NCBI GenBank assembly: GCA_965649765.1
Contig: OZ287752.1
Location: 86,676,001-86,740,000, forward strand
DNA: 64,000 nt
Source of the DNA: Bispira polyomma
Lineage: Eukaryota
Reading direction: 5' to 3'
The stretch's first letter is position 1; every line of letters begins with the position of its first letter. The notes under the pieces are model-generated. The model saw only the letters and a program-made list of their open reading frames with translations. It was not told the DNA's origin and searched no databases. Shown one piece after another: positions 2,560 to 48,555 of this stretch. The position numbers and the translations under genes are program-made.

Positions 2560-3433
2560 AAGTGGCTACTGTGGCAGCAGCATTTGGAGTGGATTGTAAG
2601 ACCTCCAGCCCCCATGCACCATGATGGACTGGAGGTCGACATTATTTTCAAATGTAAAAGTCGCACCAGAGCGACGGAAAGCATGAAAGGTAAATGTTGA
2701 CGACTTGAGGTGAAGTCACAGTACATTGTTAACTGAAAACAATGGATCAGAAAGGTTTGGTTGATTGATCTGTATCATTACACGTAACACAGTTACTGGA
2801 CATAGGATTGAATTTTGAATAAAAGGGAGTTGTACAAAGTGGAATTGGTTATAGCGTTGAAGGTTTTTAGCCCATCTTATGACGATGTGCACCCCAGGGT
2901 GTCCCCATATTAAATCTTGGAGTGTAACGTGCCTGTCACGATTGATTTGTGATGAGGTTGTGGGTACTAAGTTTGATAGCCTAAAGAAACAAAAAAAAAA
3001 GCTGTAAGAAATAGAGCTTGAAATACATATGAATTTTTAAAGTGTTCACATTGCTGAATTATGGCAGTGAGTATTGAAATTGAAATAATTGATTTCAACT
3101 TAGGGTTATTAGGGGTAGAGATAGAAAGTGATTTCAGGAAGAGTCGAATATGTGGGTGTTGAAAGGGGGTGGTGGAAACACTCCACAATTGAAAGTAGAA
3201 TTTTATAGCTGAAAGGTAATTCTGAATGGAAGGTGGTTTTAAGCCTTGCTGGGCAAGGTATTCTAAGAATACTAATATAAAATTTGTTGATGTGTAGTCA
3301 GGTACTTGTAAAGCAATTGCTAAAGTTAGATACAGTCTGATACATTGCAGGTATGATTGCTTGGTCTTTTCTGTGACGGCATTTGGAAGTCTTTGTAATG
3401 CATCAGAATAAAGGTTTTGTTGACAGGATGACC
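2560..3433 (-). pseudogene. Tyrosine recombinase of YR-1 (frameshift in the poly-A/T run near 2995)
   Basis: Manual translation gives ILVFLEYLAQQGLKPPSIQNYLSAIK...FFRLSNLVP...RWAKNLQ...FHAFRRSGAT...HGGWRS, collinear with the intact YR at 25841-26817. Confidence 0.85.
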
Positions 3434-3445
3434 CTGAAAAATTAT

Positions 3446-5118
3446 TTAAATATCATAATTAAGAGTGAAGTCATTATCAACTATAGCCCACCACGATTTG
3501 TGTACCAATTCTGACAACAGTTGGTGGGGTACTTGCTTCTGTGAAAATAGTTGTGAAAGGCAATCAGCCATTACATTTTTAACACCAGGAATGTGTTTTA
3601 GTTGTAGCTTTATGTTACATATAGTGACCTCAAGCCATATGGCTCTGGTAATTAGTGTGAGGGAGTCGTCCCGTATTTTCCCTGTATTTAAAGTGTGTAC
3701 CACGGCTATGTTGTCACACCATATTTGTAAAATAGACTCAGAGGGTTTTTCTACTTTGCTTGGGTTTATTGGTAAACCTAAATGCTAAATAAGGGAGTAC
3801 AATGTCTGAAATGATTGTTTTGCTTTTTCAGGAGTATTTCCCGCCACTATGTCATCGATGTAGTTGTAGATGGGAAAGTTCTTGGTACTCATAAGCCGAC
3901 GTATTGAATCTGTCACCATTTCACAGAGGGCGGTGCCGTGCTTATAACCCATCATGACAGAGAGATCAATATAGGTTTTATTGTTCCAATTTAAAGCTGC
4001 ATAATTATAGTTGGCAGGATCTATTCTTAAATTTCTAAACGCCCCAGACAAATCGATTTTATATAGCATACAATTAGGGCCTAACTCATTAATTCTGTCC
4101 ACTAACATGTCAATTTTAGGGAGGGTTAAACCAAACTCATGATTGTCATACACGCCGTCCAACACATAGTTATTGACAGATGAATGGTCATGAGGCCATG
4201 ACAAATCTACAATGATTCGACATGTGTTGTCACTTTTAGGGCGAGTCATGACAGGTGAGAAGTGTATATTTGTAAAGGGAGGGGTGTTAAATGGCCCTGC
4301 AATAGCCTTGTGAAGGCGTTCAGTTATAAAGTACTCATCAACACTGCTATTTTTGCTGAGTGGCAGAGTCATGCTTTTTTGCTATGCTGTTAAACCTGAA
4401 ATTTTGTTTTTCTATACACAAAGGAAATCCAAATTCAAGGTATTCTGGTAATAGTATATTAGTCTTGACGCATTAAATTTCTCCAAGCAGGGATATTTAA
4501 TTCTGATGGTACTGGCAGATGTGCTCCCATTTAATTTGGGCCCCCAATTTGGTTAACCTTATTGTGCTAAAATGGCCCATTCTTCTAGAGTCTGGTATTG
4601 AATTTGGTTTCTACCTTGAGGTATGCTATATACCGGCTTATTGATACACATATATCCATAATTGTCTTTGGACTTTTGAAACTGTATATTTTTGTGCAAT
4701 TCCCACTTTACACAAGTGTCAATTATAGGTTTTGAAAGGGGGCCACCCTGAATGTCAGGTTTGCTGACAGAAGGAGAATGGTGTATTACCATGGATTGTG
4801 GTGACACAGGACATATAGCAATATCCCCCCTTTGAGGGGGGTGAGAATAGACTTTTTGTGTGACATATTTTTGGGATACTAACTTGTTTACATTTTTGTT
4901 TAATTTCACCTTTTTTGGGGTCAATGGCAAGGGTTGTGGAGGGCGGGATTTTTTGTTTTTTTCACACACACATCCCCTGTAAGTTTACCCTGAACCTCGT
5001 TGGTTTTTAACTTTTTAGAATTATTATAGGCCTCCAGCCAAGCAGTGTTCCAAAAAGACTTAGTTTTTATGCTTTCGGGGCTTGCTGGAGGCTTTTTCCG
5101 TTTTCCGGGCCCTTGCAA
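3446..5118 (-). pseudogene. pol (RT-RNase H) of YR-1, frameshifted and partly deleted
   Basis: FSPVMTRPKSDNTCRIIVDLSWP, YKIDLSGAFRNL and YNYIDD are DIRS-type RT motifs. DNIAVV...HIPGVKNVMADCLS is an RNase H motif. Confidence 0.85.
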
Positions 5119-7794: not shown

Positions 7795-7955
7795 ATTGAG
7801 TTAGGTTGTACCTTGTTTTCAACAGCTTAGGTCAGATCACAACAGCCACCGACCTACAGCAAGTAATCTTCAAAATGAAGGAACGAACAAAATTCCAACC
7901 AACACTGGTGAGAGGCCAGTGATTGTGTAGCGAACATTTCTAGCCACTAGGCTAA
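7795..7955 (-). mobile_element. tRNA-derived SINE (MetaSINE/MESC-like family)
   Basis: Minus strand starts with an A-box-like TAGCCTAGTGGCTAG and ends with GACCTAAGCTGTTGAAAAC...CAACCTAACTCAA, a tail shared with other copies in the window (44716-44935, 56735-56865, 61295-61505). Confidence 0.6.
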
Positions 7956-8418
7956 TCACTAGGTTAATCACTAGGCTAACCACTGGGCTAATCACTAGAA
8001 CAACGTTTAGGCTATCCGACTAGGCTAATCAGTAGGCCAATCACTAGGCTAACCACTAGGCTAACCCACTGGACTAATCACCAGGCCAATCACTAGGCTA
8101 ATCACTAGATTAATCACTAGACTAATCACTAGGCTAATCACTAGGCTAACCACTGGGCTAATCATTAGGCTAACCCACTATTCTAATAACTAGGCTAACC
8201 ACTGGGCTAATCATTAGGCTAACCCACTATTCTAATAACTAGGCTAACCACTAGTCTAATCACTAGGACAAGCACTAGGCTAATAACTAGGCTAACCACT
8301 ATGCTAACCAAATAGGCTGACCACTAAGCTAACCACTAGGCCATCACTAGGCTAACCACTAGGCTAATCACTAGGCCAACCACTAGACTAATCACTATGC
8401 TAATCACTAGGCTAACCA
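7942..8418. repeat. 12-bp minisatellite (CTAATCACTAGG / CTAACCACTAGG)n, roughly 40 units
   Basis: Directly visible tandem array. Confidence 0.95.
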
Positions 8419-8594
8419 TAACATGACAATGGTGTGTTCACATCTTGCCCACAAATCAAGATTAACCAAATTGTCCCATATGATGCCTTCACATTAGTAA
8501 GTAATATACCTTAGATAAATATAATACCTTTCTCAATTGTTTTAAGGAGAAATTCAAACTAACTTTTATAAATGTTTCCTTAGAATCACCAACT

Positions 8595-14299: not shown

Positions 14300-15410
14300 T
14301 TGTAATTAGACTTTTATCGCACTTAATCTCCCCTTAACAAAGGGGACTCTAGTGCACCAGCACAAAAGACCAATTTCCAAAATCAAGGGACAGAAAAGGG
14401 TCAGCACCACAGAGCGTGCCTGGGGATGATTGAGACTAAGGTGGGTATGCTTTAGTGTACAAGTGGGTTTTAAGCTGCTTTCTAAAACAAGCTAGTGAGG
14501 GAGAAGCACGAATCACATCAGGAAAAGCATTCCAAACAATAGGAGCATCAAATGCATACTGTGACCAAACTGTTTAACCGACTTTTGAGTAGATGGGTGG
14601 AATTTCGGAACAACAAGGAAATTACTACCACTGTGACTACGTCTGGTATTGTAGGAACTACTGTAAGTGGAAAGATATGGGGCAATATACTTTGGAAACC
14701 CTGTGTAAAGAAACTTATAAACAAGTGTAGCTGTCTTAAACACTGAACGCTGTTCAACGGGAGTTATACTGGTGTATCGACTGGTGTTTGACACATTTCT
14801 ACCTGCACTATTTTGAATGCATTGTAATTTACGTAAATTAAACATTGAGAGACTCCTGAAAAGCGACTTTTGTCAGTCTACTACTAACAAAAGAATTGGC
14901 CACAAATATAGAAGCATCATAAGTGAGAAATCGCCTGACACGTCTAAAGTCCCGGAGTTGCACAAAACAGCTTTTGCAGACACTTTGAACGTGTTTAGAG
15001 AAAGAAACGTCAGAGTCAAACCATACACCCAGGCTCTTGACAGAATCAGCTGGGCTGAAAGGGCTACCCAGGATGTCAACTAGAAACAATGCTTTCAACT
15101 AATCCTTCTGTTGTTTTGAGCCAAAGATTATGAACTCAGTCTTGTCGGGATTATGTTTGAGTTTACCAGTTGACATCCACTGTGTCACATCGTCAAGGCG
15201 ACTGTTCAACTGTTTAAAGGCAGTAGATGTGGTCTTATGGGATAGATGAACATAAATTTGGGTATCATCTGCATAAAAATGAAACTTAATACCTGTGTAT
15301 TTGCCCATAACCAATCTGAAAGGGGCAGTGTATAATGATACCAACAGAGGGCCCAAAACAGAACTTTGAGGAACACCAAACAAGAGTTTACACAGATCGG
15401 ACAAAGTAGA
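14300..15410 (-). mobile_element. 5'-truncated L2-like LINE (RT C-terminal half, 3' UTR and tail)
   Basis: GVPQSSVLGPLL, HFYADDTQIY, NPDKTEFIIFG, VKSLGVWFD. The 3' end AGATTAAGTGCGATAAAAGTCTAATTAC resembles the end of the copy at 19420-19452. Confidence 0.9.
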
Positions 15411-15423
15411 GTAAGTGTCTCAG

Positions 15424-16231
15424 AGTGGTATTTCAGTAGTACCTGTTTTATGGAGGTGGTATTTCAGTGGTACTCGTTTCATGGATGTAGTATTTCAGTA
15501 GTACCTGTTTCATCAAGGTAGTATTTCAGTAGTACCTGTCTCATAGAAGTGGTATTTCAGTAGTAGCTGTTTCATGGAGGTGGTATTTCAGTAGTACCTG
15601 TCTCATACAGGTGGTATTTCAGTAGTACCTGTCTCATAGAAGTGGTATTTCAGTAGTAGTATTTCAGTAGTGGTATTTTAGTACCTATTTTAGTAGCTGT
15701 TTCATGGAGGTAGTATTTCAGTAGTAGCTGTTTCATGGAGGTGGTATTTCAGTAATACCTGTTTTATAGAGGTGGTATTTCAGTAGTACCTGTGTCATGT
15801 ATGTGATATTTTAGTAGTACCTGTTTATGTACGTATTTTAGTACCTATTTTAGTACCTGTTTTATGGAGGTATTTTAGTAGTACCTGTTTCTTAAAGGTG
15901 GTATCTTGGTAGTACCTGTTTCATGGAGGTAGTATTTTAGTAGTACCTGTTTCATGGAGGTAGTATTTCAGTAGTATCTGTTTCATGGAGGTGGTATTTT
16001 AGTAGTACCTGTTTCATAAATGTGGTATCTTAGTAGTACCTGTTTCATGTAGGTGGTATTTTAGTAGTACCTGTTTCATGGAGGTGGTATTTCAGTAGTA
16101 CCTGTTTCATGGAGGTAGTATTTCAGTAGTACCTGTTTCATGGAGGCGGTATTTTAGTAGTTCCTGTTTCATGGAGGTGGTATTTCAGTAGTACCTGTTT
16201 CATGTAGGTGGTATTTCAGTAGTACCTGTTT
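15424..16231. repeat. 31-bp minisatellite GTGGTATTTCAGTAGTACCTGTTTCATGGAG, roughly 25 units
   Basis: Directly visible tandem array with unit variants. Confidence 0.95.
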
Positions 16232-16239
16232 CTGTCTTT

Positions 16240-16390
16240 GTTTTATAATAATAATTGAAGCATTCATAGAGCGACAAATTGATGAGAACATCCTGTAAAG
16301 CGCTGATATCCAAAAGGGGATGGTCCAGGGGCGAGCAAAAGGTTGGTCCCAAAAAAGCATCCACCAGGAAAGAGACTAAGGAGAGGTAGA
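16240..16390 (-). mobile_element. 3' end fragment of an L2-like LINE with (ATT)n tail
   Basis: Homologous to 8595-8770. Confidence 0.5.
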
Positions 16391-23880: not shown

Positions 23881-24384
23881 GTAAGGGGTGAGATCAAATA
23901 TGATGGTTTGATTCAAAGCAAAAAGTATATGAGTTTTGACCTTCACAATGTTTGGTCAATGTGTTTGAGGGCAAGACATTTTAACCTTTAAAGTCACTGG
24001 TGGGATAGTTTGATTGATCTATGTACAACTTTAAAGAAAAGTTTAAGATTAAAATTGTAAATGTTCTACAAACATAAAATTTATAAGATAAAGTATTTTG
24101 TTGAATAACATATAATAAGATTTTCCCTAAAAATTGTAGGACGGTTAGGATAATATTATCCATCTTCACACTTTTTAAATTTTTGGGGGGTCAGTGACTC
24201 CACATTGGAAAAGGCACTGTGGCCCCCCTATAAGAAGTGGTGTGATTAGTTATATATATACATATTTTGTGATTGACTAAACAAGTTATTGATACAATCT
24301 GTCAGTGTTTAGTACAGATGAGCAATAAGGTAAAACTAAACAAACTATCGCACTACACATCATGTACAAACTTTAATGATACTA

Positions 24385-24572
24385 CAGTTCCCTATTTGTA
24401 GTCAAAGTAAGTTGTTGATATCCAAGTGTCTATGGTTAGTGATATAAGACAATGAAAAGATACTGTTTTGTAGTTTATTTTCCTGTACAAGTTAGTATGG
24501 CTATGTACAATATACAGTAATTAGTATAAAATATATTTAAAATTGAAGAGGTAGCTGAAATTTGAAATGAAC
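24385..24572 (-). repeat. Split direct repeat B2 (3' terminus of YR-2)
   Basis: Near-identical to 25642-25829. Confidence 0.95.
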
Positions 24573-25000
24573 CCTTCAACAGAATAAAAGATATACAATA
24601 ATACTAGTATAACAAAGCACGTAAATAAAAGTACAAAATAACTAGTGTAAATATAAAGCAAACAACCCATATAGTTGAAGCTTATGAGACTAGCCCGTTA
24701 CATTAAAACCATTAAAATTATCAGGGGTACAACTACGTCTACACACACCAGATATAAGTGTTCCTGGGACTAGCCCACCACATTGATTCAGTATATTACA
24801 TTTACTCTATTATTTCTTTAATTCAATACCACTGACATAATGTCACAGCAGTGAGCCCACGACAGCAGACAAATACACATGCAAGTTTCGCACTATGGTA
24901 GACATTGTCAACCGATTTAGTAGGCCTGTGGCCCATCCGACATTTATAACTAAGTTAATAAATAATCAATGTACTGTTTACTGATTTGTGCAGACGTGCA

Positions 25001-25145
25001 GTGGAACCCGAGGCCTAAGGTACCTATTCACCTAGCAGAGAAGAATTCAGTCCCTGTCCCCTTATTCAACCCTGGCCACTACAGTTGGGCTCAGAGGAGG
25101 GAACAAGGACTGAAAACGTCTCCACACAGCCGAGAGTTCAACCAC
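25001..25145 (-). ncRNA. Putative structured RNA motif, copy 1
   Basis: 17-bp helix UUCAGUCCUUGUUCCCU/AGGGGACAGGGACUGAA whose G-U pairs work only on the minus strand, plus flanking helices; covaries with copy 2. Confidence 0.65.
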
Positions 25146-25215
25146 CCGTTTGCCATTCTCTGAAATTTTTATTTACCTAATTTGTACTTAATCTTACTGG
25201 ACATGCAGGGAGTCC

Positions 25216-25355
25216 GTGGAGCCCGAGGCCTGTGGTACCTAATCACCTAGCAAAGAAAGAATGGTCAGATCGCCCTTACTCTACCCTGGCCACTATAGTT
25301 GGGCTCAGAGGAGAGCGAAAAGACTACCCGATCTTCACCCGGCCATGAGTTCAGT
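25216..25355 (-). ncRNA. Putative structured RNA motif, copy 2
   Basis: Same loop sequences as copy 1, with different but still pairing stems (GUGAAGA/UCUUUGC, UCGCUCU/AGGGCGA). Confidence 0.6.
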
Positions 25356-25420
25356 GTTCATCCTGGATTACCTAGTAAAATGTAACTTAAGTGGTGGAAT
25401 CTTAGGGGTTGGTGGTGGGA

Positions 25421-25641
25421 ATAAAATTTAGTTTTTTGTTGTTGACCCTTTGAATGCTTGGTCCAATATGGCACCCAAAAGTGGGGACATAATTTCTAAT
25501 GAAAGGTGGTCTAATTAGTGATTGGCTAATTGGGAAAAGTGTGGGAAGTATGTACTTGTTGACAAGAATAGTTTTTTAAAGGGGGTATTTACTAGGATGG
25601 GGAACTGATTTAGCAGGCCCCTAAAGTTGTCGTGCTCGACA
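25421..25641 (-). repeat. Split direct repeat A2
   Basis: Near-identical to 30960-31180. Confidence 0.95.
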
Positions 25642-25829
25642 CAGTTCCCTATGTGTAGTCAAAGTAAGTTGTTGATATCCAAGTGTCTATGGTTAGTGAT
25701 ATAAGACAATGAAAATATACTGTTTTGGGGTTTATTTTCCTGTACAAGTTAGTATGGCTATGTACAATATACAGTAATTAGTAAAAAATATATTTAAAAT
25801 TGAAGAGGTAGCTAAAATTTGAAATGAAC
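25642..25829 (-). repeat. Split direct repeat B1
   Basis: Near-identical to 24385-24572; starts just after the YR stop. Confidence 0.95.
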
Positions 25830-25840
25830 TCAAACCCAAG

Positions 25841-26817
25841 TTAGAAAGAGGAGGGGACAATGTTTGCAAAAGTGTGAGGAATCACAGAGGCAGCTTGTGA
25901 TGTAGATTGAAGATAAGTCCAAACTGCTGAGCTGTGCCAAAGCCCATGTGCCATAATATTTTGTAAAAAAATATTGTTATTGAATGCTAATGTTGCGCCT
26001 GACCTGCGAAAAGTGTGGAAACCATGGGTAGAATGGTCAATGCCAATGTGTTGAAGAATGATTTTTAAAGCTGCTCTAATGTGTGAGTCCACCACAGGAT
26101 AATAAGGGGGTGATGCTGAGGTAAACAAGGGGGTGGAAGGTGCCAGTCCCCTGTTACTGATCAGCTGAGTAAGTGCTGTTACTGGGCAAAGTAAGGGAAC
26201 CTTAATTGAGGGCAACTGAACCACATGTGAGTTGGATCTGTCCTGCATGTTCTTTGCCCACTTTATTATGAGGTGTACCCCAGGAGGGCCAAATACTACG
26301 TCATGAATAAGTAAATTTCTAGTGGGGTCAAATTTCCTTCTTGAGTGAGGGGCGATGTTGGACATACGCAAAAATCCATAAAATGCCACAGGAAAAATGG
26401 CCCTAAATAAATGGGGGTCTTGTAGGATTTCGCAAGCCTGTGATATTTTTAACACTTGTTTGATGTCAAATACCCCTTTTGAAGCTGGTCTAAAAGGGGA
26501 GTTGTGAACCAGACTATGTGTAAACAAAGAGATGGCATTGTGTTGAAACACTGCTGGGTTAATCTGATATTTAGCCGACATGAATTTTAATGCAGCGAGG
26601 TAGTTGTTAACTACTTTTGGAGACAAATTATTTTGAGTGAGATATTCTAGAAAGGCCAAGACTGAATGTACAGTTATGTCCTGAATGTGTGCATACTGTA
26701 GGAAAGAGAGGAAAGTCCTAAATTGGCTGGTGTAGGCTGATGTGGTTGCTGGCCTCAGTGCTGTGTTGATCTTGTTGATCGCAGCAGTGGTCAGTGAATC
26801 TGTAGCTGTTGTAGCAC
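25841..26817 (-). CDS. Tyrosine recombinase of YR-2, intact; no ATG at its 5' end, predicted exon 2 of a Gag-YR fusion
   Basis: Catalytic set R (GFLRMSN), K (WAKNMQ), HxxR (HTFRR), H (HGLW), Y (VWTY). The frame is open upstream of the ORF-track start as GATTATDSLTTAAINKINTALRPATTSAYTSQFRTFLSF. Confidence 0.93.
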
Positions 26818-26823
26818 CTACAA

Positions 26824-29627
26824 TTAAATATTATAATCTAGGTTAAAGTGTGTTATGGGAATCTCCTTGCATGTACAATGACTTAGTTTTACTAACATTT
26901 CCTGTTTAGGGGGATTATCTGAATATATGCACGAAAGTGCGTCTGCCCATATATTCGTCTGCCCAGTTATGTCGTGTAAAGAAGATATCAGCCAAATATT
27001 ACAGATGCATGCTGCCAAAAAGGGGTCCCTAGTTTTGCCGGTCTGGACGACCAAGACTACGGCCATATTATCACAGTGAAAGGTAACTTTCTGGTGAGCC
27101 CAGTCCTCACCCCAGATCCTTAATGCAATAACTATGTTAATCATTTCTAGTTATGTTATATGTAATTTTTGCCATATGCCACCTAGTCATGTTAAGCAGG
27201 CATCCAGGTGTAACTCAGTAGCATCACTGATGATCGAGGGGACAATATAAGCGACTCCATTATATTTAAATAGGAAGGCAACAAACCAATCTAAATCTTT
27301 CTTGATGTTATCTGTAAGTTTAAATCTCTTTAGCGTTAGGAGAAGCCCTAAATACCGAAAGTAACCTATTGATGAAGCATCTGGCCGGTTTCACACATTT
27401 GTGAATATATAGCAATTTCCCAAGTATGGACTGAAATTTTGAACGTGATAACCATGATTTTGTACGTGCTTCCACACATGCGTCATAAATTTCTTTAATT
27501 TTTTCGGGGGTTATACTAAAAGTGCCCTCGTCAATGTTAATGTCGATACCTAAGAATGTAATCTGTGTAGAGGGGGGTGCAATTTTTTCTGGGTTCATTG
27601 GGAGACCAAGGTTTTTAAGTAATGTACAAAAGATGTCAAAACCTCGTTGCGCATCCAATTTTTGACAGACACAAATATAATCGTCAATGTAGCATGAAAG
27701 GTCAAATCCTTGCTTTCTCATGTGGTCTGCGATAATGTCCGAGCAGTGCTGAAATACGGCACTGCCGTGCGCCCACCCAAATGCGACTGCAGCATCAACG
27801 TAGTACTTATTGTCGTGACAAATACCAAGTTTAAGAGCATCGACAAGGTCTACTCTCAAATTACGAAAAGCTCTAGCTATATCGACCTTGAACATTACTG
27901 GGTCAGAAAATTTTAAAATGTTAGAAGTGACAGTATCTGTGTTAGGAAACTTAAGGAGAAATTTTGTGTTATCATAGGTATCTCTGCTAACGTGATCATT
28001 TACTGAATCACCCAATGGGTGAGAGAGATTTAGTATAACTCTACGTTTGTCACGGTCTTTCGGTCTGGTTAATAGGGGGGAACAGTGGTAATGTGGATCC
28101 GGAAGTATGTCCACTGGACCTAACATGGCCCCTTTAGACTTCTCTTTGTCTAGATATTGAACAATCGCATTTGAGTATTCAAGAGCAGAGTGATGATTAG
28201 TCACCTGTTTAACCTGTAATTGGTCTGCGTTCTCTAGGGACAATGGAAAACCGAATTTAAGGTATTGGATTACGATTTTGTCTGGGTGAACCTGCGTTAT
28301 GTTTTCCCATGCCGTGATGTTTAACTGGGATTTGACAGGGATTTGGAAGTCCTGTGTCCCTTATGATATTTGCAGCGAGTGTAATGTCCTTCATATTTTC
28401 TAGCAGAACCGAATCTCTGTCTGGCCCTACAAATTGAAATGGAGTGCTAGTAAGCTTAATGAAGCCTGTGTTCTTATCAGGGTTATCAATGTCCTTAGAA
28501 GGTAAAGTTTTTGAAGAAGAATTAACTTCCAAGTCCGGGCCCACCAGCCCATCCAGGTCGTTAATGAGCGGAGCAGAAGTACAACTCACCTTGTGCATTT
28601 TATCCCATTTATTTATGGGTTTCTGAACTTTATTACTATTAACATGTATATCATCATTTTCAATTATCTTATCTATGATATCACACATAAATTGAGAATA
28701 AGCACAACCAAGTGTTTTATGACATGCCAGGTCTTTGTTGTAGTTGTCATGAGCATTTGCTGCCCCTATTATTTCTTTGTCATTAAACTTATAGACCCTG
28801 TTCCATTTATGACCATTCATAATAATTCCTTGTCTTTTTTTAGTCACCCTCAGTTGGAAACCTGGTAACTCGTCTAGACCTGTATAAATAAAATTACTGT
28901 CTGCATTGTCCCACTCCCTAACACAAAAACCTGACATGTCACGACAATTTGGAAATTCTAAGTATACCAATGCTTTAGCCCTGGTGTTAATATCATGATA
29001 ATCATAGAATTCATAGTTCATTATCGAAACTATGCATTTAGTCTTAATTGTGCCTCCATACACGAACACATACTATTTGTCACCTTGATTGATATCTGGT
29101 CTCTGAACATAACAATACCTGTGTCTATAATTAGGCCCATCTATATCAATTGAAAAATTATTGTTACCATTATTATGGTGACCCAGTTGGGTAATCTCAG
29201 ATTTTTGAGGTCTTTCCAAAATATGATCTTTAGTAAGCCCATTCTCATGGTGGCCATTGTGTCTAATATTTTGATTCCCCATCTCATAGAAATTTCCCTC
29301 TCTTGGGCAATTATCTGCATGATGTTTCATCATGTCTGATTCCCCACTACCAGACCTGTCACAGCCTTGTTCAGAGACACCAGAATCAAGAGTTTTGACA
29401 TTACCAATCGAATGTATATTTTTAGCTTTTACATTATAGTCTTTCACACTATGGCACCCCTGAGGGTCCCTATGTGATTTTTTCAAATTATTTGACCATT
29501 GACTTTCCACATTACAATTATCATTATACACAACATTATTATAACTAGTGACTGTGACTTTATCTCTAATACCCTTAAATGCTCTACTCTCTCTGTTAGT
29601 TCGTTCACTTGGTCGTCGACCAACTCC
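26824..29627 (-). pseudogene. pol of YR-2: long N-terminal extension, RT (27320-28243), RNase H (26824 to about 27250); disrupted
   Basis: CSPLLTRPK, FKVDIARAFRNL and CYIDDY (RT); FHCDNMAVV and NIWADALS (RNase H). In-frame TAG at 29073 and frame breaks or stops near 28250-28330, 27320 and 27150. Confidence 0.92.
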
Positions 29628-30887
29628 CTAGCTTGGTGTCTGCTTGTCTGAAGATCTTTTTGCAACATTCGCCTTGACACATTTAAATTCTGGGTGTGTG
29701 TTCTCCCTATTGGCTGAGCGAAAACAGTGATTACATATATGACGATACTGTCCGTGGTCGGATTCGTGGTTGCAAGTGCCATTGTTGTAAAATTTACATA
29801 CATTTTTGGAGTTCTGTGCTGCCTGTGGGGCTTGTGCGACATGGCTATTAATCATAGCCAACTGTGAGGTGTTCATGCGATTTAGAGCCCACTGGGTGGA
29901 GTTCGACCAATCCAACCGACTCTCCTCGACTTCTTGCATATACAATGCCCAACCTGACCTAACAGCAGGCCAGGGAAGAGAAGCTGAGTCTCTGAGCGTA
30001 TAAATCATTTGATACATCATATTCCTCATGGTAGTGACGTCTGAGACCTGCACTATATTAAACAATTGCCCTGCAGCCCACTGTGACAGTGTGAGGTCAT
30101 CGAAACTGGGTCATTTACGAACAGTGCCTCCGATCCAACCCTCGTTCGACCACCGGGATTTAGGGTCAGATGTAATAACATCTGTGGTATTGAAGCGGTC
30201 GGATTTTTGCCTAAGGGAAGTCTTACCTTGCGACAAGTTCGTCCTGAGCTGCACATCATAAGCCACCAGCCATTGGTTCACTGCCGCGTTGACTTCAGGT
30301 GAGGTTTTTAGGACATCCAGTCGAGGGATGATGCCATCTCGCTGATAGTCATGATGTTGTGCCGCCAGGGGGGCCCTATGTGGCAAAGCCTGAGTGGCGT
30401 GAATGTCTGCGTGCATCTGGGTAGTGTGGTGGTTACTCGGATGATAACCGTGTTGTTGTGCCACCAGTGGGGCCGTGGGTGGCATAGCCTGAGTTGCGTG
30501 GACGTCTGCGTGCGTCTGGGCGGTGTATTGGTTACCCGGTTGAATCAAGGGAAATCTGTCTGTAATGGGTGGCCGTAATTCTAACATGGTATTGTTAATG
30601 CCCTGCTGTGTAGGGGAGGTTAATGGGGTCGAGTTATATGCCTCTTTCAGTTCAACTTTGTTAAGCCTCCTATTGATTTCTGAATTTGCTGATTCAAGTC
30701 GTTTAAGTATAGACATAACATCTGAAATACCATTCTCACCCTTCGCTGACTCATCCGTCGCTGTGTCTGTGTTCCTTGAGATCCTAAGTTTCCTCACAAC
30801 TGGGTCTGTGCCTTTCTTTGTCCCACGTTTTGAAGTCATTTTTTTCTTAGATAATGGAACACTACCTGGTGCTTTCGTCTTCCCCAT
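29628..30887 (-). CDS. gag-like ORF1 of YR-2 (one in-frame TGA at 30111-30113, probably CGA>TGA)
   Basis: ORFs 30111..30887 and 29628..30065 are in the same frame (RK*PSFDDLTLSQWAAGQ). Coiled coil, a 33-aa tandem duplication (about 30345-30530) and C-terminal CKFYNNGTC...HICNHC...H...C zinc-finger-like motif. Confidence 0.85.
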
Positions 30888-30959
30888 AGTGTATATATAT
30901 TAAAAACAGATAAAATCACTTGTTGTAAGACACATAAAACCTTCAATATATTCCAGTAA

Positions 30960-31180
30960 ATAAAATTTCGTTTTTTGTTGTTGACCCTTTGAATGCTTGG
31001 TCCAATATGGCACCCAAAAGTGGGGACATAATTTCTAATGAAAGGTGGTCTAATTAGTGATTGGCCAATTGGCAAAAGTGTGGGAAGTATATACATGGGA
31101 ACAAGAATAGTTTTTTAAAAGGGGTATTTACTAGGATGGGGAACTGATTCAACAGGCCCCTAAAGTTGTCGTGCTCGACA
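30960..31180 (-). repeat. Split direct repeat A1 (5' terminus of YR-2)
   Basis: Near-identical to 25421-25641. Confidence 0.95.
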
Positions 31181-31713
31181 TATATTTCGTACTGGCTTGC
31201 TGGAACTTGCAAAATACGATTGTAATAAATTAAATTAAAAGAAAACAATTTTATACATTAGTCTAAATTAAACTTAAATTAAATAAATTTAAAAGCCAAG
31301 TGTAATTTACAAAAAAGCACAAAAAACATTAGAAGACATAAATTATTCAAGAGACTGTTTTTGTCTAATTTTAATCCATCAGAGTATCACAAAAAATGAA
31401 ATAAAAATATGGGTTAAAAAGATCGTGAAACTAATTTCTTATGGAGGATAAGGATTAAAGGTGACTGTATAAGACCATTCTGCATTGGGGGAAAATACCA
31501 GAATAGACTTACACTGTTAGTTATACTTTCAGATGAAATAAGTAAAGAGTTCTACAACAATTACCAGAAAATAGTCATTTTACAAAAAGAAAACAATGAA
31601 ATGGGTCACGACTGAAGTGTGGTCAACCACGATATTATTATTAGGAACTTTTTGTAATTTTTCTGGAATACTAACATTACATCACTTCATCAGATAGATG
31701 TAATTTTTAAAAT

Positions 31714-32130: not shown

Positions 32131-32141
32131 GATAATAATAT

Positions 32142-33901
32142 TGTAACGGACGAGCAGTCTACTTATTTAAATGGTAGGAGCTAGTATATTTCTGCTGTCA
32201 CACGTTGTAGATATGACTATCTAAGTTCAGTTATCTCTTATGAAGGGATGTAGTCTCTCTCTAATCTCAATATAGACATATAGTGGTGCAGTCTATATAC
32301 TTCTGAAGTGATGTAGTGTCTCTCTAATCTCTATATAGACCTATTGTGGGGCAGTCTATATACTTATGAAGTGATGTAGTCTCTCTCTAATCTCTATATA
32401 GACCTATTGTGGTGCAATCTATATACTTATGAAGTAATGTTAATGTGTGTATTGTCTATTATTTTCTTTTCTTAAGATCTTAATTAGTTTTAGATAGGTG
32501 TTTAAATAAGGTTGCCCTTAAGTGACTTATTCAAATAAAAAAAAACAGTCAATTCAACAATGACCTTAAATAGTCCAGATTTATTTATATACAATAAGAT
32601 ATTTGGTAATATTTATAACTATAATGACTACACAGCTAGTTGTAGTTAAATTTCCCACTAACCAGTTATTTAAATATTAGTCAGTAATTTGGGTATAATT
32701 TTATATACATGAAGTAGATATTTACAGAATAAATAAATGTACTGACATCTATGAGTAAGACAGTCAATTTTGTACATCAGTTGTACTGTCGCATCTGTTT
32801 ATAACAGTTAAAAAAAATATCACACAAGTGATTCACTGTATTTTACTATAAAATACTACCAGAAGATAAATTTGTAGTAGGATGTCCAAATTTGGGAAAT
32901 GTTTACATGACCTTCACCATAAATTACCGCCAAATTAATATCTGTCAAAATGGGCCTAAAATAATATATGGAGTTATCAAAGTGGTCCCAAATATTAATA
33001 AACTATAAATAAAATTACTAACTGTCAATATCTGAAAGCTGATCTAATAACTTCTAAATGCTGAAGAGTTGTAAGAATAACTGTTCACACAGGGAGTTTC
33101 CAGACTGAAACCGCCAAATTCACAGAGCAGAGAGGTTATATAATGTATGCTGTAACCAAGGAGATCTGACATGCTCTGTGCTCAGTCACAGAGAACTGTA
33201 TTAATCAATACATTTCTAAGGCTAAACTAAATTTCTAGAACCAAGTATAAATGCCTAAGTAATCATTCTAATGATTAAATATACTAAATAACAATATTAT
33301 ATAACATTTATAAAGCAGTTTACCCTGTTTAATAGCCCTAAACTGTTAATATAAACTTCTACTAAACTTTGTTTTAGTCTCGTACTTCACTTCCTGTCTG
33401 GGAAGATATCAACAAGTAACTGTCAAACATGGCTGACAGCAGCCAAATTAATTCCATAAACTGGCTCAGAAACAACATAGAATCAATATTTATACAACAA
33501 AACCCCTAGAAACCACTTTACACAAGGTCAGTTATAGTTTATACTAGCTAGATTACATAATGTAAGTCCACAGTGAAAACAATATATTTCTCGTAACTTT
33601 AGTCTATTTACCGGTCCAAATTCTGGCTCACAGATCAACTGATAAGATAACAAGGCTATATATTCTGGCTTGTGCCTGAGTTCTAGCTCACCCAAAATCC
33701 CCCTAGCCCACTATTTACTGATCACAGATAAGTCCATTCTCAAATATGTGGTACTGTATAGTTAATTAATTATGCATAGAAAGTGAGCTTAGTTTGCCTA
33801 TAAAATATGCACTGAGTGGTAAATATATCACACAGCTTGATATCAGACAATCAATATATTCCACTCTAGCTGTATAAGACTTAATATCCAGATCCGCTAC
33901 A
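32142..33901 (-). repeat. 3' LTR
   Basis: TGTAACGGAC...TCCGCTACA; near-identical to 40480-42240 apart from scattered substitutions and a few short indels. Confidence 0.97.
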
Positions 33902-40477: not shown

Positions 40478-40479
40478 GT

Positions 40480-42240
40480 TGTAACGGACGAGCAGTCTAC
40501 TTATTTAAATGGTAGGAGCTAGTATAGTTCTGCTGTCACACGTTGTAGATATGACTATCTAAGTTAAGTTATCTCTTATGAAGGGATGTGGTCTCTCTCT
40601 AATCTCAATATAGACATATAGTGGTGCAGTCTATATACTTCTAAAGTGATGTAGTGTCTCTCTAATCTCTATATAGACCTATTGTGGGGTAGTCTATATA
40701 CTTATGAAGTGATGTAGTCTCTCTCTAATCTCTATATAGACCTATTGTGGTGCAGTCTCTATACTTATGAAGTGATGTTAATGTGTGTGTATTGTCTATT
40801 ATTTTCTTTCCTTAAGAACTTAATTAGTTTTAGATAGGTGTTTAAATATGGTTGCCCTTAAGTGACTTATTCAAATAAAAAAAAACCAGTCAATTCAACA
40901 ATGACCTTAAGTAGTCCAGATTTATTTATATACAATAAGATATTTGGTAATATTTATAACTATAATGACTACACAGCTAGTTGTAGTTAAATTTCCCACT
41001 AACCAGTTATTTAAATATTAGTCAGTAATTTGGGTATAATTTTATATACATGAAGTAGATATTTACAGAATAAATAAATGTACTGACATCTATGAGTAAG
41101 ACAGTCAATTTTGTACATCAGTTGTACTGTCGCATCTGTTTATAACAGTTAAAAAAAAGTATCACACAAGTGATTCACTGTATAAAATACTACCAGAAGA
41201 TAAATTTGTAGTAGGATGTCCAAATTTGGGGAATGTTTACATGACCTTCACCATAAATTACCGCCAAATTAATATCTGTCAAAATGGGCCTAAAATAATA
41301 TATGGAGTTATCAAAGTGGTCCCAAATATTAATAAACTATAAATAAAATTACTAACTGTCAATATCTGAAAGCTGATCTAATAACTTCTAAATGCTGAAG
41401 AGTTGTAAGAATAACTGTTCACACAGGGAGTTTCCAGACTGAAACCGCCAAATTCACAGAGCAGAGAGGTTATATAATGTATGCTGTAACCAAGGAGATC
41501 TGACATGCTCTGTGCTCAGTCACGGAGAATTGTACTAATCAATACATTTCTAAGGCTAAACTAAATTTCTAGAACCAAGTATAAATGCCTAAGTAATCAT
41601 TCTAATGATTAAATATACTAAATAACAATATTATATAACATTTATAAAGCAGTTTACCCTGTTTAATAGCCCTAAATTGTTAATATAAACTTCTACTAAA
41701 CTTTGTTTTAGTCTCGTACTTCACTTCCTGTCTGGGAAGATATCAACAAGTAACTGTCAAACATGGCTGACAGCAGCCAAATTAATTCCATAAACTGGCT
41801 CAGAAACAACATAGAATCAATATTTATACAACAAAACCCCTAGAAACCACTTTACACAAGGTCAGTTATAGTTTATACTAGCTAGATTACATAATGTAAG
41901 TCCACAGTGAAAACAATATATTTCTCGTAACTTTAGTCTATTTACCGGTCCAAATTCTGGCTCACAGATCAACTGATAAGATAACAAGGCTATATATTCT
42001 GGCTTGTGCCTGAGTTCTAGCTCACCCAAAATCACCCTAGCCCACTATTTACTGATCACAGATAAGATAAGTCCATTATCAAATATGTGGTACTGTATAG
42101 TTAATTAATTACGCATAGAAAGTGAGCTTAGTTTGCCTATAAAATATGCACTGAGTGGTAAATATATCACACAGCTTGATATCAGACAATCAATATATTC
42201 CACTCTAGCTGTATAAGACTTATTATCCAGATCCGCTACA
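40480..42240 (-). repeat. 5' LTR
   Basis: Near-identical to 32142-33901. Confidence 0.97.
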
Positions 42241-46439: not shown

Positions 46440-48555
46440 TTAAAATTGGACGGTAAACACAGTAATAACAATAGGCGTGGGGAATATTAGTTTTATTCTA
46501 AGTTGGTTAAACTACATCATATACACACTGAGAGACTAAGGTCACCAGGGATTTAAGGAGATCAGAAAGTGACCGCTTAAACTGAGTTTAAGTTGTGATA
46601 TTAAGGTTAATTGAGTTTTACAATTAGAAATTAAGGTCGTTTTACCTTAAGATGCCGGATTGGATTACTTTAAGGCCATTTTAGCTTAAGATGGTTGTTT
46701 GAGTTAGGGTAACCTTAATGGCTTTAAGTTTTAACTTAAGTCTAGTTTGAAGATATAGGTGACCTTAGTCTGAGATACACACGTAACAAGTTTAAGGTTT
46801 AAAATGAATTAGAAAAAACACCCAAATTAGTGAGTAGGGTTGGAAAGTAGGTTTTGAAAAGCTATGGCCACTTGGTCGGAAGCTTTATGATCTTTTGTAA
46901 TATATTTCCATATGCATTCTGAGGTCCATGTGCCATGGCTTTAAATTTCCTGTAATGGGACGTGGTTATTAAAGGCCAGTGTGGCCCCTGAAAGCCTGAA
47001 ATCGTGAAATGTTATGGGAAAATATGTCGTTTTCAATCTGACTAGTATTTGCTTCAAATTATGTCTTATTTTTGAATCCGTCAGAGGGTGACTTGTTACG
47101 ACCTGGTGACAGGGCTAGGACATTTCTAATTGCTGCCACAGGGCAGAGTACTGAATTCATGATACTTGGAACCTTAATGATTCTTATTGAGTTTCTATTC
47201 TGGATGGTTATGGACCATTTCATTATTACTTGCAATCCAGGGGGAGCAAAGAGCACATCCGCCCTGGCAAGCTGTTCTAATGGATTAAACATACTGAGTG
47301 TATGAGGGACTAAGTTTGATATTCTTAAGAAGGAGAAAAAGGCTAACAGGTAAGCAGCCTTGAAAATTTGCCCCATGAACATTGTATCACAGATCTTCAC
47401 TATTTCTGTAAGCAAGGCAATATCAATAACCTTGTTAATTCTGGCTCTGAAGGGTTTTTGCAAGATTTGTGCCTTCTGAAAATACTTTATATAAGGTTCT
47501 GATTTTAAATTTCCTGCCATGTTAATTCTCTGAAGGTCCTTTAGTCTGGTGTCCACTCCCTCTGGAGCTGGTTCAGCTGCCTCAACGTCTGGAGAGAGGG
47601 AACCATGAGGTCATCCAAATCCGTGGGCCAACGGTTCTTCTGCCTGCCAAATGCCTGAGACTCCTGTGGCTGCTGCATCGCGTGCTGCCTGCCAAATGCC
47701 TGTGAATCCTGGGTTTGCTGCACCACCTGCTGCCTGCCAAATGCCTGAGCCACTCCTCCCACCTGTGGCTGTACCTGTGTGCTACTGACATAATGATCTA
47801 AATTTGTAGGCACACGAGCCACTTTCTGAATGAGGGAATTAACACACTGTCTGTCTGTTTCTACCCGTTTCTCAACTTTTGACATTCTGCTTCCGAGGTC
47901 TTTAAGTTATTGTAATATGCGCAAATTCACCTCCGCCGATGACATGGCGGTGTTATCATTATTGTCCTCACTCTCACTTTCTACATCCTGCCAATGTTTA
48001 CCTGGTGCCATCTCACTGGCACTGTTTATCACAGTTTTTAATTTAGTTTCTTTAAGTCGATACACTGAAATATATAATATAAACACTGGGCTTTGATATT
48101 TGCGGATATAAGGCTATAGATGTATAATTAATTTGTATAATGACTAGAATGAAATATAATGGTTACGTCCCCCAAATTTTTGCTCCCAACATCAAAGCCA
48201 GAGCAATATTCGCATATATCAAAGCATAGGTTGTCCGTCACACTCCAATATGATCCCTGATCCACTGTAAGCACGTCCTATGATTGCAGACTTGTAGAAT
48301 AACACACATATGACAGACATTAACAAAAGTAGAATTTTAAAAACAAATTTAAGATATCTTAAAATGGCGTGTTGCCTAGTTGACTTCAATTATAAAAGTG
48401 AATCCCTCAGGCTATTTGGTGGGAATTGGCTGTGTAATTGAGTTAATGAGAGCCAATGGCAATTGGGGTCATGCTGACCAGAATAGTTTTTAAAAATCCC
48501 TTCTGGCACTGACCCTACTAGACCCTTCGGGCTACCTTGCATACCTACCGGTCTA
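46440..48555 (-). mobile_element. Internally deleted YR retrotransposon (YR-3): gag 5' part fused to YR 3' part, no RT/RNase H; inserted into a SINE
   Basis: gag-like 47500-48050 (coiled coil, Q-rich AFGRQ repeats, VPSLQTLR). YR 46827-47500 (FSFLRISNLVP, FHDFRLSGAT, HGTW, IWKY). SINE halves at 48555-48650 and 46348-46440. Confidence 0.85.

Follow-up and report, generated by a model that had tools for sequence, protein, structure and literature searches.

Among the tyrosine recombinase (YR) retrotransposons of the DIRS order, the Ngaro elements were reportedly described by Goodwin and Poulter in 2004. They carry their genes in the order gag, reverse transcriptase (RT)/RNase H and tyrosine recombinase, lack protease, DDE integrase and methyltransferase, and are delimited by split direct repeats in the arrangement A1...B1-A2-B2, and their open reading frames (ORFs), like those of DIRS elements, are described as overlapping or frameshifted (PMC7192593, PMC9210276, PMC3783388). 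Native splicing as a means of YR expression goes unmentioned in the DIRS, Ngaro and VIPER literature examined, a body of work that leaves the founding Ngaro papers outside its coverage. Here we analyze a Ngaro-like element from Bispira polyomma that occupies the minus strand from approximately 31180 to 24384 of a 64,000-nt stretch of DNA (GCA_965649765.1, contig OZ287752.1, 86,676,001-86,740,000 of the forward strand), hereafter referred to as the window, whose positions serve as coordinates throughout. Comparison with related copies indicates that the YR of this family is probably made as a spliced, in-frame fusion of the N-terminal half of Gag with the recombinase.

In the env mRNA of avian sarcoma/leukosis virus the splice donor is situated inside gag, and the gag AUG plus six codons are joined in frame to env. 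The element studied here would likewise use an in-gag donor to supply an AUG to a downstream ORF without a usable start, but the contributed segment would comprise about 220 codons, the N-terminal half of Gag, instead of six, and the recipient would be an integration enzyme instead of the envelope protein. Foamy viruses translate Pol from its own spliced mRNA and do not fuse it to Gag. Here, too, a replication enzyme would be provided by a spliced subgenomic message and not by Gag-Pol frameshifting or read-through; unlike foamy virus Pol, however, it would be fused to Gag, and only the recombinase would derive from spliced RNA, whereas RT/RNase H would be made from the unspliced form.

According to this model, one full-length transcript would serve three products in the living family, with a division of labour of the retroviral kind. 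Unspliced RNA would be translated into Gag and, by read-through of an in-frame TAG-G, into Gag-Pol. A fraction of the RNA would be spliced from a mid-gag donor MAG/GTAAG in phase 1 (slashes within motifs mark predicted exon-intron boundaries) to an acceptor YAG/ just past the pol stop, also in phase 1, which would remove the C-terminal half of gag together with the entire pol. The spliced message would thus start at the gag AUG and encode the ~220 N-terminal Gag residues, comprising a basic tract, a conserved helix and a disordered linker, which would be followed by a Gly or Asp codon at the junction and then by the whole recombinase, whose SAM-like core-binding domain lies shortly past the join.

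Predicted Exons of the Window Element

The coordinates and the exon arithmetic given in the initial annotation proved correct on the minus strand in every respect (Table 1). Together, the two predicted exons amount to 1638 nt, corresponding to 545 codons and a stop, and the junction codon G+GT would provide the Gly that links ...LSQ to ATTATD.... A TAA closes the YR frame five codons ahead of the junction, and the first in-frame Met is codon 83 of the open frame, within the SAM-like N-domain, to which a Pfam match at residues 19-79 belongs. Landmarks inside the predicted intron are a TGA in gag (30113-30111), the native gag stop TAG (29630-29628) and the pol/RNase H stop TAA (26826-26824).

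Exons 1 and 2 were each translated and searched on their own. The product of exon 1 consists of a basic N-terminus, a conserved helix and a Q/H/P-rich linker and has no Pfam match; 18 genomic copies as well as a second host have homologs of this gag N-half. Exon 2 matches Phage_int_SAM_4/1 at residues 16-79 above the cut-off and, weakly and below the cut-off, Phage_integrase at residues 195-293. In the alignment of relatives the YR residues R150, K185, H267-x-x-R270, H290/W293 and Y301 show no or almost no variation, and the predicted junction precedes the SAM-like domain by 12-18 residues.

The window copy itself is dead, with a TGA in gag and a pol that is split across three frames with internal stops. 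That all disablements lie within the predicted intron, as pointed out in the initial annotation, is true for this copy but carries no statistical information: the intron accounts for 68% of the span, and the approximately five disablements would all fall inside it with p ~0.15. Exon 1 of L031, a close relative, contains a stop.

Conservation of Donor, Acceptor, and Phase

The B. polyomma genome (1.04 Gb, 75 contigs) harbors a very large family with more than 13,000 candidates at first look; 123 genomic relatives were scored. In nearly all of these 123 matches, only 4-9 codons separate the opening of the YR frame from the beginning of the match. Twenty full-length genomic loci were taken for comparison. 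In addition, the protein collection led to a second host (ENA assembly ERZ22147071), from which elements with 45-53% YR identity were obtained; some of them have gag, pol and YR all open and terminal repeat pairs that are each 100% identical.

Whether relatives keep the donor, the acceptor and the phase had been proposed as a check of the splicing model, and they do so in every related copy that holds both regions. All 18 genomic copies of this kind possess CAAG/GTAAG after gag codon 220 and YAG/G two bases before YR codon 1, down to identities of 38% in the gag N-half and 70% in YR. The second-host elements likewise have a phase-1 CAA GGT AAG and, where YR starts, ATTTCAG/. Altogether, the sites recur across approximately 12 lineages from two hosts, always in the combination phase 1/phase 1, and the recurrence of the predicted splice sites is in excess of chance.

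The donor is also conserved at the level of codon choice. All 21 copies compared share an identical CAA GGT AAG. Among nine lineage representatives, 35 of the 38 conserved degenerate gag columns use two to six codons, and the remaining three are exactly the consecutive Q, G and K codons of the donor; in YR, which served as background, two of 83 such columns are invariant. The conserved Leu, Ser, Arg, Gly, Gln, Lys, Asn and Asp neighbors of the donor all vary synonymously. Synonymous sites are saturated between lineages, and yet only the donor codons are invariant in the gag set; conservation of the predicted donor goes beyond the protein level, and nucleotide-level selection maintains the predicted sites in deeply diverged lineages of two hosts. 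In more distant gag lineages the Q is replaced by P, encoded by CCA, which gives CCAG/GTAAG, and the acceptors read ATTTCAG/AT. Donor position -3 thus switches between two consensus bases even though the residue changes with it. At the acceptor, different amino acids are encoded just before the junction (codons TCA, GTA, TTA, CTA), with YAG/G always retained, and YAG/G occupies the equivalent place in all copies bar one decayed copy, in the variants TTTCAG, TTTTAG, TTCTAG and TTGTAG.

Similar arrangements are present outside this immediate circle. In a distant family, whose gag is 571 aa long, a phase-1 CAG/GTAAT donor occupies the homologous gag position, and the acceptor, TTTGTTTTGCAG/GT, is located in a noncoding spacer past the pol stop with a clear pyrimidine tract upstream. 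A third family in the genome has the donor ACAG/GTAAT, again in phase 1. The first YR element of the window, too, has a pol TAA that leads into TTTTTCAG/GG, and no ATG. At 3380-3560 (minus strand; YR match 2599-3434), in a distant YR element with 30-40% YR identity, the pol frame ends in TAA, and AATAATTTTTCAG/GG comes next where the YR frame opens, without an ATG; the acceptor arrangement equals that of the main element. We would give about even chances to the broader proposition that splicing of the Gag N-half onto YR is ancestral and general in a broad animal Ngaro-like clade, with the Gag half, including its basic tract and conserved helix, serving as a module that takes YR into the nucleus or to the complex of Gag and cDNA.

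The initial annotation had proposed that the gag-internal donor is joined to the acceptor at the YR start. This pairing is strongly backed by the comparative data. We infer that splicing takes place and that the fusion is produced, and its Gag half may have a role in localisation or assembly. One may speculate that a coiled coil tethers the recombinase into particles.

Start Codon of YR and Alternative Routes of Expression

The initial annotation also stated that YR has no ATG, which holds in the window's lineage but not in sister lineages and in the second host, where an ATG lies four codons before the junction. The codon at this position is TTA (in the context TTAA) in the window's lineage and CTA in a sister lineage; elsewhere it is ATG, ATA, GTG, TTG or GAA. 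The two lineages with TTA and CTA group together as one clade (support 100/99), and their YRs are separated by a nonsynonymous divergence (dN) of 0.05 and a synonymous divergence (dS) of 0.70. With a resulting dN/dS ratio (omega) of 0.07 over a dS of 0.70, the YR of this clade has been kept functional, under strong purifying selection for a long period, without an ATG of its own. Such a history is hard to square with reinitiation and fits easily with an AUG supplied by gag.

Caliciviruses and influenza B employ termination-reinitiation at an overlapping stop and start (ATGA or TAATG). Several lineages and the second host show the same classic coupling arrangement, an ATGA 10 nt before the junction in which the YR-frame ATG overlaps the pol stop, and the position of this stop is fixed in nearly all copies, which fits reinitiation as well. 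YR could then be translated alone from unspliced RNA, by reinitiation or by independent initiation, and the splice-like motifs would be incidental. We consider this unlikely. In contrast to the viral examples, the window's clade and several other lineages have no such ATG, and YR is nevertheless under purifying selection; the would-be restart codon TTA or CTA has two mismatches to AUG, and further lineages have ATA, GAA, GTG or TTG in its place. Moreover, reinitiation leaves unexplained the frozen synonymous sites at the donor, the substitution to CCA, the AG kept through residue changes and the acceptor within a noncoding spacer. In the ATG-bearing lineages, however, it may coexist with splicing as a second route of expression, since the ATG overlaps the pol stop there. 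A different function of the gag motif is suggested by the fact that unspliced retroelement RNAs exploit U1 binding: the motif could bind the U1 small nuclear ribonucleoprotein without being spliced, for example to suppress premature polyadenylation or to retain the RNA in the nucleus, and YR would be expressed by another route. The nucleotide-level constraint on a perfect U1 match of 8-9 nt agrees with such a role, but separate explanations would be needed for the conserved acceptor exactly at the YR start, the matching phase in every lineage and the translation of a YR without ATG, and we regard it as very unlikely.

The YR acceptor might instead receive a trans-spliced leader or be joined to a donor in the 5' leader, and YR would then have a monocistronic message of its own that contains no Gag residues. 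This kind of processing calls for an acceptor just ahead of the downstream ORF, and the conserved one is so placed, but in the window's clade the product would still be without an AUG, and the constrained, phase-matched donor in gag would have no explanation; this makes for a highly improbable route. For overlapping retroelement ORFs, -1 ribosomal frameshifting is the usual assumption, and in the window's lineage and those closest to it, but not in L055 or L059, YR is indeed in the -1 frame to pol with an overlap of a few nucleotides. The usable overlap is merely 7 nt, though, and differs between lineages (TATTTAA, TATCTAA, CATATGA, TGTATAA, TGTGTGA); no slippery heptamer X XXY YYZ occurs among the overlaps of the compared lineages, and in the distant family pol and YR are ~100 nt apart, with each of the three frames stopped in between. 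A Pol-YR fusion formed in this manner is therefore given next to no weight. Finally, the window copy is decayed, and GT and AG dinucleotides are common enough that a functionless chance resemblance in a dead copy could be suspected; this is effectively refuted by the presence of the sites at homologous positions in ~12 lineages of two hosts and by the synonymous freeze confined to the donor.

Besides the ATGA overlap, several observations weigh against the production of a spliced Gag-YR fusion. The donor codons encode conserved residues, so their conservation is partly a matter of the protein, and in the window's lineage the branch point and the pyrimidine tract are weak and overlap pol coding sequence. 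A search of sequencing runs for the window sequence retrieved three DNA-like runs from one study and no RNA run. No copies that had lost the intron were detected when the coordinates of gag N-half and YR matches in the genome were compared, as adjacent pairs were absent and all pairs were 2.6-3.6 kb apart. The longest match to YR in the protein collection has 348 aa, which leaves no room there for a fusion of the gag N-half and YR of more than 500 aa; a region search with the gag N-half gave proteins of only 244-427 aa and no fusion, and a phmmer search with the gag N-half against 1.84 billion representatives yielded six weak matches, again without a fusion. The reads of the three DNA-like runs over 25700-31200 have genomic-type coverage, and the joints listed do not include 30227/26817, a result that is uninformative on splicing. 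A metagenome scan found no relatives.

Two candidates for direct traces of the fusion were rejected. A 571-aa protein encoded beside L057 is not a Gag-YR fusion but the longer gag of the distant family. The third YR element of the window (46845-48030, minus strand), in which the gag N-half abuts a 5'-truncated YR and pol is absent, could be mistaken for a spliced copy. Its breakpoint (47501/47500) lies 14 nt past the ACAG/GTAAT donor of its relatives and within YR, and full-length relatives (L061-L065) match it in two pieces that are 1.5-4.9 kb apart. Because the breakpoint is located 14 nt beyond the donor, the element is an internal-deletion derivative and not a splice product.

The expression of the recombinase in the DIRS order has so far been left at overlapping or frameshifted ORFs, and a conserved intron would, if true, be a concrete answer. 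It would carry the retroviral principle of subgenomic splicing over to a third class of retrotransposons and would represent a strategy of expression and assembly, splicing of a Gag half onto YR, that is not known to have been described for any YR retroelement; it would further hint at a physical link between recombinase and structural protein. For genome annotation, ORF calling that accepts ATG only would miss or mis-call the recombinase of these elements.

Element Architecture and Gag-Pol Expression

By its gene content and repeat layout, the window element is classified as a decayed Ngaro-like YR retrotransposon of the DIRS order with the organization A1-gag-RT/RNase H-YR-B1-A2-spacer-B2 (Table 1). 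Its interior matches Pfam RVT_1 (~27542-27907). The intact relative L051 from the second host encodes a pol of 842 aa with RVT_1 at residues 442-583 and RVT_3 (RNase H-like) at 719-807 and no other Pfam domains, including those of proteases and DDE integrases. The absence of a methyltransferase separates Ngaro from DIRS1 and PAT-like elements. L051 has no match to such a domain, with Pfam as the sole basis for this absence, and its pol ends ~35 residues beyond the RNase H match. The ~400 residues upstream of its RT domain (pol 1-440) are without a Pfam match.

Table 1. Features of the YR element and of its predicted splicing, listed from the 5' to the 3' end of the element.
Feature	Position in window	Strand	Remarks
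A1 terminal repeat (5' end of element)	30959..31180	-	222-nt direct repeat, 95% identical to A2
Predicted exon 1	30227..30887	-	gag ATG (30887), 220 codons and one G; 661 nt, open, phase 1
Predicted 5' splice site	30221..30230	-	CAAG/GTAAGA, phase 1; GT at 30226-30225
Predicted intron	26818..30226	-	3409 nt; gag C-half and decayed pol (RVT_1, RNase H region)
Predicted 3' splice region	26818..26855	-	TTTAAC branch-like motif, AT-rich tract, TTGTAG/; AG at 26819-26818, 6 nt past pol stop
Predicted exon 2	25841..26817	-	GT, 324-codon tyrosine recombinase and TAA (25843-41); 977 nt, open frame
B1 repeat	25641..25829	-	189 nt, 97% identical to B2
A2 repeat	25420..25641	-	Pairs with A1
A2-B2 spacer	24573-25419	-	847 nt
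B2 repeat (3' end of element)	24384..24572	-	Pairs with B1

Gene order, absent domains and split direct repeats are thus as in Ngaro. Unlike in the textbook scheme of these elements, A2 and B2 are parted by a spacer of 590-850 nt, and, also unlike Ngaro, no hydrolase ORF was seen in the elements analyzed here. L051 likewise has the layout A1...B1-A2-spacer-B2, and the members of its A1/A2 and B1/B2 pairs are each 100% identical. The spacer occurs in both hosts (L051, 7899-8486), and a short direct repeat is found inside it in the window (25059-25111 and 25273-25325) as well as in L051 (8025-8092 and 8194-8261). Immediately upstream of A1, the second-host loci L051 and L052 contain approximately 15 copies of a 74-nt tandem repeat (829-2016). 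Because this array is identical at the two loci, it may be part of the element or of its preferred target.

In the copies checked that have an intact junction, from both hosts, gag and pol share one frame and are parted by a single TAG-G (TAA in L036); the gag ends compared were those of the window element (29628-29630) and of L036, L041, L043, L044, L046, L049, L051 and L053. Since only one stop intervenes between the two genes in the same frame, this junction suggests that Gag-Pol would be formed by stop-codon read-through. Its origin from the same transcript, as put forward in the initial annotation, is plausible.

Other Features of the Window

A segmental duplication with a spacing of ~8.3 kb connects 32141-33901 and 40479-42240, which are 97-100% identical over several blocks. 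Tandem arrays are present at 15317-16317, with a period of 31 nt, and at 7907-8442, with a period of 12 nt (ACTAGGCTAATC-like).

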